A stretch of 63,307 nucleotides of DNA, the filler included, from Octopus bimaculoides (taxonomy: Eukaryota): the NCBI RefSeq assembly GCF_001194135.2. It is 7 parts of 6 records of this genome, joined end to end, with 100 filler letters (N's around TTAATTAATTAA, not from the genome) between each part and the next. Parts side by side here need not be neighbours in the genome. Positions count along the whole stretch, not along the records: positions 15,648 to 21,401 come from NW_026349454.1; 6 more parts are not named here. One strand, written 5' to 3'. A model generated the notes under the pieces. That model was given only the letters and a program-made list of their open reading frames with translations, made no database searches and had not been told where the DNA came from. Each line of letters opens with the position of its first letter. Within the stretch, counting starts at the first letter, position 1. Positions 9,229 to 21,501 of the stretch are shown here, piece after piece. The position numbers and the translations under genes are program-made.

Positions 9229-10670
9229 ATTTTAAAACTTGTTATTAAAACAATAAATCTCCAAAATGATTCAGAGTATTCCAATTGAAAAACATATACG
9301 AACGTATTGGACAGTTTTTGTTTAAAAGGTGAAAATATATCTGAAATACTCATCTAATGTGCAAGGACGCAGTATATAGGATACGGTAATTAATTATATT
9401 GTAGGAAAGTAAAAAGTAAAGAGAAAAAATAGAATTAATATTTTTGATTTTGTTCGGCTCTATGAATTTAATTTTTTTTAAATGCTTTCGTTAATTGCTT
9501 GATACAAGAAAAAAGAAATTGAAAAAATCCCAACTAAANNNNNNNNNNNNNNNNNNNNNNNNNNNNNNNNNNNNNNNNNNNNNNNNNNNNNNNNNNNNNN
9601 NNNNNNNNNNNNNNNNNNNNNNNNNNNNNNNNNNNNNNNNNNNNNNNNNNNNNNNNNNNNNNNNNNNNNNNNNNNNNNNNNNNNNNNNNNNNNNNNNNNN
9701 NNNNNNNNNNNNNNNNNNNNNNNNNNNNNNNNNNNNNNNNNNNNNNNNNNNNNNNNNNNNNNNNNNNNNNNNNNNNNNNNNNNNNNNNNNNNNNNNNNNN
9801 NNNNNNNNNNNNNNNNNNNNNNNNNNNNNNNNNNNNNNNNNNNNNNNNNNNNNNNNNNNNNNNNNNNNNNNNNNNNNNNNNNNNNNNNNNNNNNNNNNNN
9901 NNNNNNNNNNNNNNNNNNNNNNNNNNNNNNNNNNNNNNNNNNNNNNNNNNNNNNNNNNNNNNNNNNNNNNNNNNNNNNNNNNNNNNNNNNNNNNNNNNNN
10001 NNNNNNNNNNNNNNNNNNNNNNNNNNNNNNNNNNNNNNNNNNNNNNNNNNNNNNNNNNNNNNNNNNNNNNNNNNNNNNNNNNNNNNNNNNNNNNNNNNNN
10101 NNNNNNNNNNNNNNNNNNNNNNNNNNNNNNNNNNNNNNNNNNNNNNNNNNNNNNNNNNNNNNNNNNNNNNNNNNNNNNNNNNNNNNNNNNNNNNNNNNNN
10201 NNNNNNNNNNNNNNNNNNNNNNNNNNNNNNNNNNNNNNNNNNNNNNNNTTTATAATTAAAACAAATTCAAAATTTAAATTTTGGAACATAAGATTTAACA
10301 TGTTATCTAGTGTATGGCCGAATTCAAATGGGTAGAAGACTTAAAACAAATGTGTGTGTGTGTGTGTGTGTGTGTGGTTGGGCCTTTAATAGCCAGGGGT
10401 CAATTTCAGTTCAACCGTAGAAAGGAATTCGAATTGGAAAAATCCTGACCAAAACAGATAAATTCTAACTTAACTTTCTCATGTTAGTTACATGTTTAGA
10501 CCAGTGGTTCTCAATCAGGGTTCATATGACCCTTGGGGTTCCATATAAGATTTTGTTGTTAAAATCCATGTCCAATAAACTGGATACATTTCTACATTAC
10601 ACGAAATATTTTAATAATTTAGAAATAATACATTTCTAAATCTCTCAGAGAGATTTATGCAGTAATGATA

Positions 10671-15508: not shown

Positions 15509-15547
<39 letters not shown>

Positions 15548-15715
15548 NNNNNNNNNNNNNNNNNNNNNNNNNNNNNNNNNNNNNNNNNNNNTTAATTAAT
15601 TAANNNNNNNNNNNNNNNNNNNNNNNNNNNNNNNNNNNNNNNNNNNNCAAGAAAACAATTAAATTGAAAAGCATCCATATTATTTTAATGCAAATGAAGT
15701 CGAAAAACGAGTTTG

Positions 15716-15752
<37 letters not shown>

Positions 15753-15953
15753 CCGTGATGGGCGTGCTTGGCGTGCTTGGCGTTCCTGTTTGTGCAGTTG
15801 TTTTGCATAAGTGGTCGTCTGTTCTCACCGGTCATCTTTTACCTGACAATGGAGTAGTTTTGCTTCCGTATTGCTGGACAATAGAAGATAACGGACCTCT
15901 GTTCTTTTTTGATTTCACCTCCCGGATTCGATGACATCAACACTTCTTTGGTG

Positions 15954-15996
15954 CCAATGAAATTGCAGAGCAGGGTGTAGATAATTTGTTATAAAT
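15954..15996 (+). promoter_or_regulatory. Possible core promoter of the secreted-precursor gene (CCAAT + TATA)
   Basis: CCAAT at 15954-58 and TATAAAT at 15990-96, about 140 bp upstream of the ATG. Motif match only. Confidence 0.3.
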
Positions 15997-16132
15997 GTGA
16001 GAGTGTCTTAGTAGAGATGTGACAGAGCTTGGCCGATTGTGCAACGGGACTGTTCCAAATCTGTTCCTTCTGATATTGGAAGCTGTCCGTGTGTCAGTAA
16101 ATAGGGGGAGCACCGAGAAGAAAATAACAGCT

Positions 16133-16905
16133 ATGAAGAACCTCGTTCTTTTCTTATTTGTTTTCGTTGTTGGTCTTTGGGTGACTGAAGGACAGCGGGT
16201 AATTAATGAGTCAGTGGTGACTAAAGGACCGTCCGTGAATAGTGAAGGACTGAGTGTGACATTAGGGGACAAAGACCCGTCAGTAAGTAATGTTTCATCG
16301 GAGAATGAGGAACAAGAAGAGAGTGTTGCAGGATCAGACGATGAAGGAGAGTCAGAGGGTGGAGAGGAATCAGAGGGCGACGGACTCTCGGTGGATGACG
16401 AGTCGTCGGAGGACGGTGAAGACGAGTCAGTGGATGGAGAAGAGTCAGTGGATGAAGAGGAGTTAGAGGGTGAAGACTCAAACAATGGAGGAATATGGGT
16501 GGTTGACGACGACTCAGTGAACGAAAGCGAGTCACTGGACGGGGTCGAGTCACTGGATGAAGTCGAGTCAGCGGATGAAGACACGAACAATGGAGGACTA
16601 TCAGTGGGTGACGATGAGTCAGTAGACGAAGACGAGTCAGTGAACGAAGAGGAGACAGTGGACGGTGACGAGTCAGTGGATGAAGTCGAGTCAGCGGATG
16701 AAGACACGAACGATGGAGGACTATCAGTGGGTGACGACGAGTCAGTGGACGAAGACGAGTCAGCCGATGAAGGAGATTCCGAGAGTGAAGATGAACCAGT
16801 GACTGAAAGTCCCTTACTGAATAATGGAACGTCGGTTTATAACGAAACGCTTGATTCTGGAAACTCAACAACAGAAGGAGAAAGTCTTGCTGTGAGGAGA
16901 AGTCG
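16133..16905 (+). CDS. Coding exon 1 of a secreted precursor: signal peptide, acidic Asp/Glu/Ser-rich repetitive pro-region, and RRSR proprotein-convertase site
   Basis: ATG at 16133 lies inside ORF 16019-16909. MKNLVLFLFVFVVGLWVTEG|Q has signal-peptide form. About 88 D/E in ~238 aa (hand count) and six N-x-S/T sequons. The ORF ends AGG AGA AGT CG|GTAAGT, so the apparent TAA stop is part of a consensus donor at 16906 (phase 2). Confidence 0.88.
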
Positions 16906-17200
16906 GTAAGTTAATGTTTCATTCCACCCGATTTCACATCGCCACTTTCCTCTTGGGTACTTCTTGTGTTTTTTACGCTTTTATTAAATAATTGGACCGT
17001 GTTTATGTCCATGTGATGTTTTAAATGTTTTAGTGAAAAGAGAGGAGTAGAGACCGTAGCTCTGCTCGGAGCCTCTGATATTGGTGGGAAACAATGGGTG
17101 AGGTGGCGCTTGCCCTAACGATTGCAACAGAATGGACTCAGAGTACCTGAATTACCCCAGCATTTGTAATTTTCTTCTCTTCTTTAATATTTCATGAGGT

Positions 17201-17418
17201 ATTCTTTTCTACCCTAGGCACAAGGGCCGAAATTTTGGTGGTGGCGTGGGGACCAGTCGATTAGATCGATCCCAGTACGCAACTTCTATTTAATTTATCG
17301 ACCCCGAAAGCATGAAAAACAGAGTCGACCTCGGCGGAATTTGAACTTAGAACGTAAAGACGAAATACCGCGAAGCATCTCGCCCGGCGTGCTAACGTTT
17401 CTGCCAGCTCGCAGCCTT
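17201..17418 (-). mobile_element. SINE family B copy in intron 1
   Basis: Same core as the other family B copies. Confidence 0.8.
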
Positions 17419-17929
17419 AATATGATGAGATATCGACATACGACTGGGCAGATGATCTCTTTAAAAGGGCTTGACCTGTTTTCCTGGAGCCTTACAACAA
17501 TATCGGGTCCGTTGTGTTTAATCCGGGCTGCTGATTCTATTGAGATGTTCCACTAACATAAGTCTGGATACATTCTGGTTCTGGAGCGTCAATCTTGAAT
17601 AAGCCAGATTCCTGTAACCAAGCTACGAACCTCAATGGGCCCAAATAATTCTGTTCTAGATGATAATGATAATTAGTATTATTTCAAATTTCTTCCACAA
17701 GGGCAGCTTGAGGGAGGTGAGGACGAGTCGATTACATGAAGTCCAGTGTTTTATTTTATCGATGCTAAAAGGATGAAAGCAATGTCGACTTCGGTGGAAT
17801 TTGATCTCAGAACGTAGCGACGGGTCAAATATCGCTAAGCATTTCGTCCAGCGTGCTAACGATTCTGCCAGTTCGCCGTCTTAATACTAATTTTGTCTAC
17901 TATAGGCACAGGGCCTGAGAGACATACCT

Positions 17930-18310
17930 CTAAACTTCGCGACATTCCTGTAGATGTCTGAAGAAATACGGCTGCCCTGCTTCTATCGCAGGATAAACAG
18001 GTACCTGTCTGGAAGCAATCTCGTCACTACAATTCACATCCAGGACCATCAACTTGCCTTCTGGATCCAGAAAGATAGTCTTTATCTTGAGATCCATGCT
18101 TCTACGGATCAACACCGCCGTTCAACCTCCCATTTCATGTTGACATGGAGATAAATACTTCTCGTATCCCACGAAAGATGGCAAGAAAGCTTGTGGGTCG
18201 GAGAGTCTAGTTTCACTGATGGTGATTACATCGACCCTTAGTGACCTAAGGTCGTTGAGTAGGTGGCCTTGTTTCCAAGGCGATCCCATGCCAAGTGCAT
18301 TTCTACGGTT
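17930..18310 (-). mobile_element. L1/Tx1-type LINE AP-endonuclease fragment in intron 1
   Basis: GSPWKQGHLLNDLRSLRVDVITISETRL, then VLIRRSMDL..DPEGKLMVLDV..VY..GQPYFFRHL, after a frameshift. Confidence 0.75.
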
Positions 18311-18622
18311 CACTCAGACCAAGAGTCACGTTAGATCAAAGCTTAGAAGCAGAGAAGGCTACTTTGATTTAGTGTGCGAAAGGAGGGGACGGATGTTCCG
18401 TTCTCACAAATCTGTGTGGATGTTTCCACGAGCAGTTCTTTGTATATTCGTCTATTTATGTCTCTGGAAAACCCCTATTCCTTCAAGGGATTTTATTTTG
18501 ATACTGTTATATGTGTTTGTATGTATATGTATATATGTATATATGTTTATACACATACAGACACACGTACACACACACACAAACACACACTCACTTATAT
18601 ATTCGTCGATTCTTTTTTCCAG

Positions 18623-18715
18623 GGGATTATGTCGAGTGAGATGTTATAAAACCGTGACCTACAAAAAGTCCCGAAGAAGCTGGTGTTGGTTCTTGAGACG
18701 GTGTACAAAATACAG
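18623..18715 (+). CDS. Coding exon 2: (R)GLCRVRCYKTVTYKKSRRSWCWFLRRCTKY(R), N-terminal half of an EMI-like Cys-rich domain
   Basis: Acceptor tcttttttccag (AG 18621-22) and donor GTAAAT at 18716. Phase 2 in and phase 2 out, matching exon 1 and completing RRSR. No stops. Confidence 0.85.
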
Positions 18716-19166
18716 GTAAATACGCAGCCACCTTTCCGGATTTTCTATACAAAGTAAACTTTCAATATAACGGCATCCATAATAACGTAAAACCTAAGCT
18801 AACGGCATTTTACTCCTCCCTTCATATATACATTTTCATTCATCTAATTATTCAATGAGTTATTTATTTACCCGAATATGGTCACAAGTAAAATGTAGAA
18901 GTTAATACTGTGATGTCTTGTATAATTGAAATCTGTATTTCTTTTTGAATTCACTCTCGCTACTATGCGTGCAACACACACACGCACACACACACGCACA
19001 CACACACACACACACACAACACACACACACTCACATACACTAACACACGTCTATATTTGTTTCTGAATTCCCGTGACGAGCACTGGTATCTGAGTCCATA
19101 ATGTATACTAATCTGTTGTATACGTGTGGGTGTATATATATATATGTGTATATATANNNNNNNNNN

Positions 19167-19250
19167 TCTTCTTCATCAGCTACCCCCGTTTTAACACCGG
19201 CGTTTCGAAGAGCTGAGCAGGACGCATCGTTAAAACGGCTCTTCCCATGG
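19167..19250 (-). ncRNA. Hammerhead-like motif cut by a gap
   Basis: Minus strand: GAAGAGC-24nt-GCTCTTC GAAAC GCCGGT GTT .. CTGATGA AGAAGA|N. Stem I cannot be formed from the visible sequence. Confidence 0.35.
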
Positions 19251-19309
19251 ACCGCAGATTAAATTTGTATACACAAATTAAACCTTGCCATGGAGGAATG
19301 TAGTGGCGG

Positions 19310-19470
19310 ATAAGCGTAGCGTGGTTGTATGGTAAGAAGCTTACTTCCCAACCACGTGGTTCCGGGTTTAGTGCAACTGCGTTGTGAGTGTCTCCTAAGA
19401 TAGCCTCAGGCCGACCCAATCCTTATGAGTGGATTCGGTAGACGGAAACTTAAAGAATCCCGTCGAATAT
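19310..19470 (+). mobile_element. tRNA-head SINE family A copy
   Basis: GGTAAGAAGCTT.CTTCCCAACCAC.TGGTTCC.GGTT..GTAGACGGAAACT.AAAGAA motif; other copies at ~6690(-), 26280(-), 30270(-), 31335, 32780, 33050(-) and 43660. Confidence 0.75.
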
Positions 19471-19475
19471 CTATA

Positions 19476-19540
<65 letters not shown>

Positions 19541-20683
19541 TTCTGTGTGTCTGTGCTTGTCCCTCACCACCGCCATCGCTTGACAACCGGTGTTGGTGTG
19601 TTACGTCCCTGCATCTTAGTAGTTTCTCAAAAGACACCGACAGAATATGTTCTAGGCTTGACCGCACTCAAATAACTGAGACAAGTAAACGAATGATGTA
19701 ATGAATGCACCTATATCTATGCGTTCAGATTATTGCGAAGTGGCATAGCGTTGCGTTTAATTATTTTTACGTATACAGCCTGACATAAATCCACACGTGT
19801 TTCAACTGCATCGATTAGTAACCGTTGCAATTACACCCCTACTATATTGCTGGTGCACTTCCTTCAGGGTCTTCTCCTTAATATCCCTTGATTTATGTCT
19901 TTAAAGTCCTTCGTTTATTTACTCTGCGTTGTATGATTTAAAGTTGTTGGAGAATTTAGACGCGAAATGTTTTCAATTCAAGTTTTGATTGGCTAATCTC
20001 TTATAGTCCGTCATTTCAAAACATCCTGTTGTTTAAATGTTTATTAGTTAATTATACTGAACAAATATGAATTTTCTCATGTGCAAGCATCCCGAAGCTT
20101 GTTCCAGTCTACAATTTATTGTATTACCTTTAGATGAAGAAAAATCTAGTGAAATTCTTCTAAGCATAAATCACATTGTTTAGTTCCAGGTCTGTGTGGT
20201 TTTGCAGTGGAAATTAATTCCCAATCGATTGTATAGTGTTTTGTTTTTGTCTTTACTCGACCAGATTAGTTTACTAAGACTCTCTTATTATTATCTCCAA
20301 ATGAACTGAAATAATTTGCCAGTCTCCTCTTGAATATTAATGAAGTCGCATAAAAAAGTATTCATTACCCTCACTTATTTATATCTTAATATTTCGCTTG
20401 GGCATACCGAAAATAACAACATGGTGTAAAACTCAAGATAGGTTTGGACCAGAATTCAATGGTAGATGAGGGTAGAATGGTAATAGAAATGACACCGGAA
20501 AAACAAAGCTTATGTAACGAACTTCATTAGCTAAGAACTGTTTCTGCAATAGAATGTGGTGGAGTCTTAGTTGAGTACCAGTATATCATCCTCTAGCTTC
20601 ATCAGAGCCTTCAATATGAAATGCACTTTATTTAGGAAAATAACATTTTCAGAACATACAGGTGTATATTCTGAAAATGTAAC

Positions 20684-20715
<32 letters not shown>

Positions 20716-20784
20716 TTGTCTGAAATTACCATCACTGCGTTCTGGTTATATATCCAATTATTCTATCCTTCTCTCATTTAACAG

Positions 20785-20861
20785 GACGGCTTTCAGGAGA
20801 ATTCGTACAACCTGTCTCAGATGCTGTAGAGGATGGATCGGCACGCCTGGAAGGTGCAAAG
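20785..20861 (+). CDS. Coding exon 3: (R)TAFRRIRTTCLRCCRGWIGTPGRCK, C-terminal half of the EMI-like domain
   Basis: Acceptor ctctcatttaacag (AG 20783-84) and donor GTAAGA at 20862. Phase 2 in, phase 1 out. Joined to exon 2 it gives C..C-TKYRTAFR..CCRGW..C, matching the EMI pattern (C..C..YRTAYR..CCPGW..C) of EGFL7/MEGF10-type proteins. Confidence 0.85.
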
Positions 20862-21501
20862 GTAAGAATATGTTTTCAGTACTGTCCAGATGTAATCTGT
20901 GGATAAGGCCTAATTTTTTTTTTATATATATTTTATATCTTATATCCAAATATAATGACCAATAGCCTCGTTTGAAATTTCCATTTTTTCATATCACAAT
21001 CCTTTGAAGAAAAGCAGCGCTATTTCATCTATTTTTTTTTTTCTGTTTTATATTCTAATATATGCAAATGAGTATCGTGACGTCTTCTTTCCAACATATT
21101 TGATTAGTTCACGTCCATTTTGATGTTGTATATCATCCCTTTTTCACAGGGAATAATCTGAGAAAGGTCTGTCTTCTTTCTCTGTCAAAGGAAGATGATG
21201 CATATCCCTTATTCTACAACAGGCGCAAGGCCTGATATTTTGGGGTAGGCTGGGTCAGTCGATTACATCGACCCTAATAATTCAATGCTACTCATTTCAT
21301 CGACTCCGAAACGATGGATTCCAACGTCGACATTGGCAGAGTTTGAACTCAGAACAAAGAAATAACGCTAAGAATTTTGTCCGGCGTGTTCACGACTCTG
21401 CNNNNNNNNNNNNNNNNNNNNNNNNNNNNNNNNNNNNNNNNNNNNTTAATTAATTAANNNNNNNNNNNNNNNNNNNNNNNNNNNNNNNNNNNNNNNNNNN
21501 N

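Follow-up and report, generated by a model that had tools for sequence, protein, structure and literature searches.

A putative Octopus-restricted secreted EGF-repeat gene with a cationic eight-cysteine domain and an expanded acidic linker in Octopus bimaculoides

A piece of Octopus bimaculoides DNA (NW_026349454.1 of assembly GCF_001194135.2) probably holds the start of a gene that encodes a member of an Octopus-restricted family of secreted EGF-repeat proteins. The piece occupies positions 15648 to 21401 of the analyzed stretch (here, the window), which is 63,307 nucleotides (nt) long, filler included, and joins seven parts of six genomic records end to end; positions are those of the window unless another locus is named. 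We read the piece in full and checked mechanically the exons that an earlier note had proposed in it. Our best explanation, which we hold with a probability of roughly three in four, is that the piece carries the promoter, the leader, and the first three exons of the gene, with the calcium-binding EGF (cbEGF) exons located beyond its edge. The family layout would comprise a signal peptide, an acidic glycosylated linker, a cationic domain with eight cysteines (8-Cys domain) that is spread over two exons, and a cbEGF array.

The window gene is represented by protein record P0001 (UniParc UPI00069532CB, 379 amino acids [aa]), which is 100% identical to the window translation. A full-length search matched two proteins of Octopus vulgaris, P0002 (“fibulin-1-like”) and P0003. 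We also built a profile from the 8-Cys domain and ran HMMER with it exhaustively against 1.84 billion representative proteins; this retrieved only Octopus members and two repeat artifacts, and it added just P0004 (O. bimaculoides) and P0006 (O. sinensis) to the three records above. Another search brought in P0008, likewise from O. bimaculoides, which covers exon 1 only. The four paralogs with the domain (P0002, P0003, P0004, and P0006) share the signal peptide (MKNLV.FLFVFVVG.W.TEGQ), an acidic linker ending in GNSTTEGESL, and the 8-Cys domain itself. All four continue directly after that domain with D-x-N-E-C and two to six cbEGF domains, which Pfam EGF_CA (PF07645) recognizes with E values of 1e-12 to 1e-37. 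The proteins are small (195 to 351 aa), and their cbEGF continuation amounts to 80 to 220 aa. Pfam scans of the four reported EGF-type families only, with no fibulin C-terminal, anaphylatoxin, or TB/8-Cys modules. The earlier note had mentioned a calcium-binding extracellular matrix-type protein as its second possibility, and it is this possibility that fits paralogs in which cbEGF domains directly follow the cationic domain.

The three-exon structure is confirmed (Table 1). The exons, with phases 2, 2, and 1, were reproduced, and P0001 uses both predicted junctions (16905^18623 and 18715^20785) exactly, being the exact translation of 16016 to 16905, 18623 to 18715, and 20785 to 20938. The acceptors of exons 2 and 3 (ttttttccag and tttaacag) are of the polypyrimidine/AG type. 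As had been noted before, intron 1 splits the last codon of an RRSR motif into CG and G, and the acidic region and the Cys domain are thereby placed on separate exons. Intron positions and phases are the same in the gene for P0003 of O. vulgaris (locus L001), and the exon model is therefore more than a chance arrangement; the gene for P0004, the other paralog gene whose DNA was read, shares the intron positions too. The spliced product of the three exons is 314 aa long. Exon 3 ends with AAA and a G that is followed by gtaaga (phase 1), with no stop codon after the domain; because exon 3 terminates in a donor, the three exons are not the whole gene.

The sole gap in the piece, a run of N's at 19157 to 19166, lies inside intron 2 right after a (TA/TG)n microsatellite; it is bordered by microsatellites, and no coding frame runs over it. 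The 8-Cys domain is one unbroken sequence in all four paralogs, and the genes for P0003 (L001) and P0004 (O. bimaculoides locus L002) split it at the identical exon 2/3 junction. No exon intervenes between the two domain halves in P0001, P0003, or P0004. On account of the P0001 translation, the junctions of the paralogs, and the lack of an additional exon between the halves, the two sides of the gap belong to one gene.

What follows exon 3 can be judged from the paralog loci. The P0003 gene has three matching 5' exons, followed by cbEGF exons of 117 nt, each of phase 1; the homologous exon 2 is located at 17666 to 17752 in L001 and at 15547 to 15636 in L002. Exon 3 of the paralogs stops at the same codon position as that of the window gene, and their next exon starts with (G)AC-AxA-AAC-GAG/A-TGC, that is, D-x-N-E-C. 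In L002, exon 3 spans 19855 to 19931, and the cbEGF exons begin at 20581. Window positions 20700 to 21401 align with L002 positions 19775 to 20474 at 91% identity, and intron 3 (20862 to 21401) is 95.4% identical to intron 3 of L002 all the way to where the piece ends. An EGF-like reading frame was sought in 20862 to 21401, and none was found; exon 4 of L002, which encodes the first cbEGF domain, begins 107 nt past the aligned end. By this alignment, the next exon of the window gene should begin about 107 nt outside the piece. Because the paralogs read on and intron 3 is collinear, the 56-residue cationic sequence is most likely an internal N-terminal domain and not a C-terminal mature part.

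Table 1. Features of the putative secreted EGF-repeat gene in the window
Feature	Position	Strand	Description
TATAAA box of putative promoter	15990..15995	+	21-26 nt upstream of 16016; TTATAAATG also at the aligned position in L001 (O. vulgaris)
5' untranslated leader, minimum extent	16016..16132	+	Block conserved in L001 and L002
Exon 1	16133-16905	+	773 nt; donor gtaagt, phase 2
Predicted signal peptide	16133..16192	+	MKNLVLFLFVFVVGLWVTEG (aa 1-20); hydrophobic core, Kyte-Doolittle means up to 3.3
Acidic Ser/Asp/Glu-rich linker (“pro-region”)	16193..16905	+	aa 21-258; ends in RRSR
In-frame tandem-repeat expansion	16200..16800	+	Units of 18, 105, and 123 nt; motif [DE]ESV[DN]E; insertion relative to the closest paralog
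RRSR codons, possible proprotein-convertase site	16895..16905 (+ G at 18623)	+	R-x-x-R at aa 255-258
Intron 1	16906..18622	+	Phase 2; GTAAGT donor, TTTTTTCCAG acceptor; holds interspersed repeats
Exon 2	18623-18715	+	93 nt; first half of cationic 8-Cys domain (GLCRVRCYKTVTYKKSRRSWCWFLRRCTKY-); donor gtaaat, phase 2
Intron 2	18716..20784	+	Phase 2; GTAAAT donor, TTTAACAG acceptor; contains assembly gap 19157-19166
Exon 3	20785-20861	+	77 nt; second half of the domain (-RTAFRRIRTTCLRCCRGWIGTPGRCK); phase-1 donor gtaaga
Intron 3, 5' part	20862..21401	+	Cut by the edge of the piece

The linker had been described as about 238 aa with about 88 acidic residues, and these counts hold: residues 22 to 258 (237 aa) include 51 E and 37 D (88 D/E in total) and 39 S, for a net charge of −82. 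Of the six N-x-S/T sites in the precursor, five fall within the linker. In the other family members, linkers are 36 to 72 aa long, carry a net charge of −5 to −16, and contain one or two [DE]ESV-like motifs. Window positions 16056 to 16199 and 16801 to 16933 align with L002 positions 9921 to 10067 and 10069 to 10198, respectively; since these flanks align with adjacent bases of L002, about 600 nt (about 200 aa) are extra in the window copy. Tandem Repeats Finder reported nested arrays of 18, 105, and 123 nt within 16417 to 16807, with the 123-nt units 91% alike; as every unit length is a multiple of three, the frame is kept. By the alignment and the repeat structure, the acidic block is a copy-specific in-frame tandem-repeat insertion by which the linker grew from about 40 to 70 aa to 237 aa. 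The succession of an acidic and a basic region is thus a modest trait of the family, strongly enlarged in the window copy. Two antisense open reading frames (ORFs) cross the acidic repeat (15937 to 16707 and 16221 to 16871, both on the minus strand; 256 and 216 aa; Ser/Leu/Pro rich). We rejected them as a gene and regard them as a by-product of the periodicity of GAN codons.

The RRSR motif at the end of the linker had been taken for a furin site. It satisfies only the minimal R-x-x-R rule, R-x-[KR]-R is absent from the whole precursor, and two further R-x-x-R motifs (RRIR and RCCR) lie inside the 8-Cys domain. The residues aligned with RRSR are TTKR in P0002, FRHR in P0003, RPPI in P0004, PTKR in P0006, and WTPP in P0008. 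With a minimal motif that is not conserved in the paralogs and that recurs within the domain, we do not uphold the furin assignment. Cleavage at RRSR is possible in the window copy, but it is not a feature of the family. If it occurs, it would free an acidic polypeptide from a protein consisting of the cationic domain plus EGF domains, and not a 56-residue peptide.

The domain and its surroundings were further compared with P0004, the closest paralog. In the domain, nonsynonymous divergence (dN) is 0.295 and synonymous divergence (dS) is 0.115, a ratio of 2.57 (32 nonsynonymous versus 4 synonymous differences; one-sided P = 0.065), while dN/dS of the signal peptide is 0.17. Exon 3 is 77.9% identical to L002, compared with the 95.4% of intron 3 (P = 2e-6). 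We rejected this excess as proof of positive selection, as divergence in intron 2, whose 3' part is only 81.3% identical to L002, matches that of the exon; the pattern would be explained equally well by fast evolution of the domain and by a boundary of gene conversion where exon 3 ends. Among 15 polarizable amino acid differences from P0004, 11 arose on the P0004 side and 4 on the window side, and by this measure the window copy is the conservative one. The high nonsynonymous divergence of recent paralogs is a lead for diversifying selection that is not yet significant.

Several observations weigh against a gene that continues into cbEGF exons. The cbEGF exons of the window copy are not seen, as the piece ends before them; P0001 ends without a stop codon, 77 nt inside intron 3; literature searches (for octopus “fibulin-1-like,” for the UniProt identifier of P0008, and for octopus cbEGF secreted proteins) found no expression, tissue, or protein data; and the high dN/dS of the domain, albeit not significant, would be more usual in an effector or immune gene than in one for a structural matrix protein. 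Given the read-through in P0001, a short product, or a copy that is no longer spliced to EGF exons, is conceivable. The record starts at 16016 with a codon other than Met; an in-frame TGA (15998) stands five codons before it, and the frame stays open through the ATG at 16133. The record resembles either an ORF of a transcript spliced only in part or an incomplete gene model built on transcripts. In the read-through frame, a stop codon is reached 34 codons after the exon 3 donor, which would yield a short product in line with the first interpretation given in the earlier note, namely, a precursor that is cut at RRSR to release a free cationic, disulfide-rich effector for antimicrobial defense, venom, or mucus. 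The balance of charge between acidic linker and cationic domain is kept across the family, the contrast in dN/dS between signal peptide and domain is as in toxin and defensin families, and the AlphaFold2 (AF2) model of the domain is a long disulfide-stapled beta-hairpin, all of which is in line with such an effector. Yet the domain lacks a following stop, and a strong phase-1 donor closes exon 3; all paralogs proceed into cbEGF arrays; RRSR is replaced in P0004 and P0008, and the supposed mature domain holds two more R-x-x-R motifs; and the read-through tail has no coding sign, because it is intron sequence 95% identical to the intron of a paralog. The longer downstream multidomain product that the earlier note had named as contradicting a released peptide is found in the paralogs and suggested by collinearity, the exon itself being unseen. 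We consider a released 56-aa effector highly improbable. Of what was proposed at the outset, a secreted protein with an acidic linker, a cationic Cys-rich domain, and an architecture of the matrix type is supported; the released peptide, the conserved furin site, and the assignment of the domain to EMI are not. A truncated or decaying duplicate, in which exons 1 to 3 are transcribed, no functional EGF exons remain, and the hyper-acidic repeat is an unconstrained expansion, would account for the end of P0001 within intron 3, for a piece (and possibly a scaffold) that ends before any EGF exon, and for the recency of the repeat expansion as judged from the likeness of its 123-nt units. This, too, is quite improbable for a copy with three open exons, intact splice sites, repeat units that preserve the frame, only 4 of the 15 polarized differences on its own side, and an intron 3 that is collinear with that of the paralog up to the edge.

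The nature of the 8-Cys domain is a question of its own. The composition given for the 56-residue sequence was reproduced (13 R, 5 K, 8 C, 3 W, and no D/E; isoelectric point of 11.1), and the domain charge ranges from +11 to +18 across all members. Each paralog domain has eight Cys residues, seven of which are in invariant alignment columns, and K, Y, Y, and G-W are invariant as well. C-C-x-G-W and the last Cys are invariant in all five members, as is the Y of a Y-x-x-[AK]-[YF] stretch, and the C-C-x-G-W...C motif sits directly before the first EGF domain. EMI domains (about 70 to 75 aa, with six or seven Cys residues) have a C-terminal CC-x-G-[WYF]...C consensus and an upstream Y-x-x-A-Y, and they directly precede EGF in EMI-EGF proteins. 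A true but strongly shortened and diverged EMI domain is a candidate, although an unlikely one; the family would then correspond, in octopus, to the EMI-plus-EGF proteins of which EGFL7, MEGF10/Draper, and Nimrod are types. EMI (PF07546) was the sole Pfam family reported for the 62-residue window sequence, the match covering profile positions 11 to 69 of 69, and none of 99 shuffles with the eight Cys residues fixed matched EMI; in Nimrod proteins, a CCxGY motif is placed alike (PMC4073527). The match itself scored 10.2 bits against a gathering score of 25 (E = 1.4). Fourteen of the 99 shuffles reached better E values (0.023 to 1.2) against unrelated families, and the EMI match is therefore at noise level for this composition. 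PF07546 gave no match at E of ≤10 with P0002, P0003, P0004, P0006, or the family consensus, and Pfam reported no family for the full 314-aa precursor. The profile search of the 1.84 billion representatives retrieved no EMI protein, and neither phmmer nor the family profile found anything in the PDB at E of ≤10. An approximate EMI sequence of EMILIN1, used as a query against the PDB, likewise found no match. To our knowledge, no canonical EMI structure exists in the PDB. A word-index search with the 56 residues alone returned no candidates and missed even the identical P0001, so that it is uninformative for short queries.

In the AF2 models, the domain forms a long hairpin of two beta-strands with a loop after it; the predicted local distance difference test (pLDDT) score is 63.8 for the model built from three sequences and 73.8 for that built from five. 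Foldseek searches of the two models against the PDB returned generic beta-hairpin matches only, none of them below E = 3. The domain is thus predicted to be a disulfide-stapled beta-hairpin; with 56 aa and eight Cys residues, it is both shorter and richer in cysteine than EMI. The likeness to EMI that had been noted stands as a motif (Y-x-x-A-[YF]...C-C-x-G-W...C before EGF) and is not supported as family membership, the profile score being under the cutoff and the paralog and profile searches and the fold search of the PDB being negative. We describe the N-terminal domain as uncharacterized and EMI-like only in motif and position. A rather improbable variant is that the family consists of Octopus-specific, fast-evolving secreted effectors with immune, venom, adhesive, or reproductive roles, in which the domain would be a new, non-EMI fold kept inactive by the acidic spacer, and in which cleavage at RRSR or retention of intron 3 could give separate polyanionic and polycationic products.

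Assuming that the window gene is the start of a secreted cbEGF protein, its domain content suggests that the product is exported and would act outside the cell as a calcium-binding component of a matrix or surface coat. The cbEGF array would form a rigid, calcium-dependent rod, and the cationic domain may serve in assembly or in binding, with polyanions or partner proteins as its ligands. The acidic linker could shield this domain, or it could add polyanionic, calcium-binding character. Secretion, calcium binding, charge masking, and a matrix role are all deduced here from sequence and would be expected rather than certain.

The 5' end of the gene is in keeping with a secreted product. The signal peptide claimed before is supported: a hydrophobic h-region is followed by TEG and Q, and the peptide is almost invariant across six family members, the alignment suggesting that it ends, and is probably cleaved, after TEG. 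The TATAAA box at 15990 may function as the promoter. At window positions 16040 to 16056, about 105 nt that separate two conserved leader blocks in L001 and L002 are missing; the difference from these loci may be an indel or a small intron difference in the 5' untranslated region.

The introns contain repeats of several kinds. Copies of a repeat of about 220 nt that resembles a short interspersed nuclear element (SINE), 70 to 85% alike, occur at 17203 to 17420 and 17751 to 17890 (intron 1) and at 21221 to 21401 (intron 3, cut by the edge), as well as in L001 (10564 to 11062) and L002 (1736 to 1903 and 34276 to 34496); they had no Rfam match at any threshold used. A second interspersed repeat, at 19321 to 19659 in intron 2 just right of the gap, has several matches in L001 and L002 on both strands (65 to 79% identity). 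Microsatellites of the (AC)n, (TG)n, and (TA)n types are located at 18507 to 18591, 18974 to 19048, 19479 to 19533, 20685 to 20714, and 15719 to 15751. Subthreshold Rfam matches to mir-297 and mir-466 (54 bits; gathering score of 90) were discarded as microsatellite artifacts, and nothing else emerged from the Rfam scan. A 63-aa ORF on the minus strand (18122 to 18313) containing VDVITISETRLS looks by eye like the N terminus of an apurinic-type endonuclease of a long interspersed nuclear element (LINE), a likeness that is unconfirmed; Pfam gave no match for the two LINE-like (by eye) minus-strand ORFs in intron 1. In L002, the gene beside that of P0004 (35867 to 37215, O. bimaculoides) encodes a 712-aa Peptidase_M4 (thermolysin-like) protein, a family that is uncommon in animals.

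If our explanation is right, the gene belongs to an ordinary class of secreted cbEGF genes with two unusual lineage-specific features: (i) an 8-Cys domain of strongly cationic character, found only in Octopus and matched by no family in Pfam or the PDB, and (ii) a recent hyper-acidic repeat of about 200 residues adjoining this domain in the window copy. The gene would be a clean example of how the growth of a tandem repeat within an exon reshapes a secreted protein, and the 8-Cys domain family merits structural analysis and a binding assay. The more exciting idea of a free antimicrobial or toxin peptide with an EMI fold is corrected here, as the evidence does not support it.

The gene can be compared with several known systems. 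With precursors of the defensin and toxin type it shares an acidic segment ahead of a cationic disulfide-rich module and a conserved signal peptide combined with a variable domain on a Cys framework; it differs from them in that the cationic module is not C-terminal, the cleavage site is not conserved, and EGF domains follow. With the acidic repeat proteins of mollusc biominerals it has in common a long, low-complexity D/E/S-rich repeat in a secreted protein and, in the paralogs, calcium-binding modules. The acidic proteins of mollusc shell matrix differ in that the likeness comes without demonstrated homology, that the other octopus members have only short acidic linkers, and that Octopus is shell-less. 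Nimrod proteins have a CCxGY motif followed by NIM repeats, CxPxCxxxCxNGxCxxPxxCxCxxGY (PMC4073527). Compared with the secreted NimB type of this superfamily in insects, the repeats of the octopus paralogs are cbEGF domains beginning with D-x-N-E-C and not NIM, the motif reads CCxGW, and the profile search revealed no homology. Proteins that combine EMI and EGF (EGFL7/8, MEGF10/Draper/CED-1, and the EMILINs) likewise have a Cys-rich domain at the N terminus, closing with CC-x-G-[WY]...C, as well as the EGF domains directly after it and the upstream Y-x-x-A-Y/F, whereas the octopus domain is shorter, has eight Cys residues with an extra C-x-x-CC, carries a net charge of +11 to +18, and fails the Pfam EMI test. 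The fibulins and the fibrillin/LTBP proteins are like the octopus paralogs in having, after a signal peptide, cbEGF domains in tandem, each encoded by a phase-1 exon; the automatic names of the paralogs are “fibulin-1-like” and “LTBP2-like.” The paralogs differ from them in having EGF-type families only, as seen by Pfam, and an N-terminal cationic domain that matches no Pfam or PDB family. Fibrillin itself begins with a short Cys-rich N-terminal unit bearing a CCPGW motif and is processed by furin.

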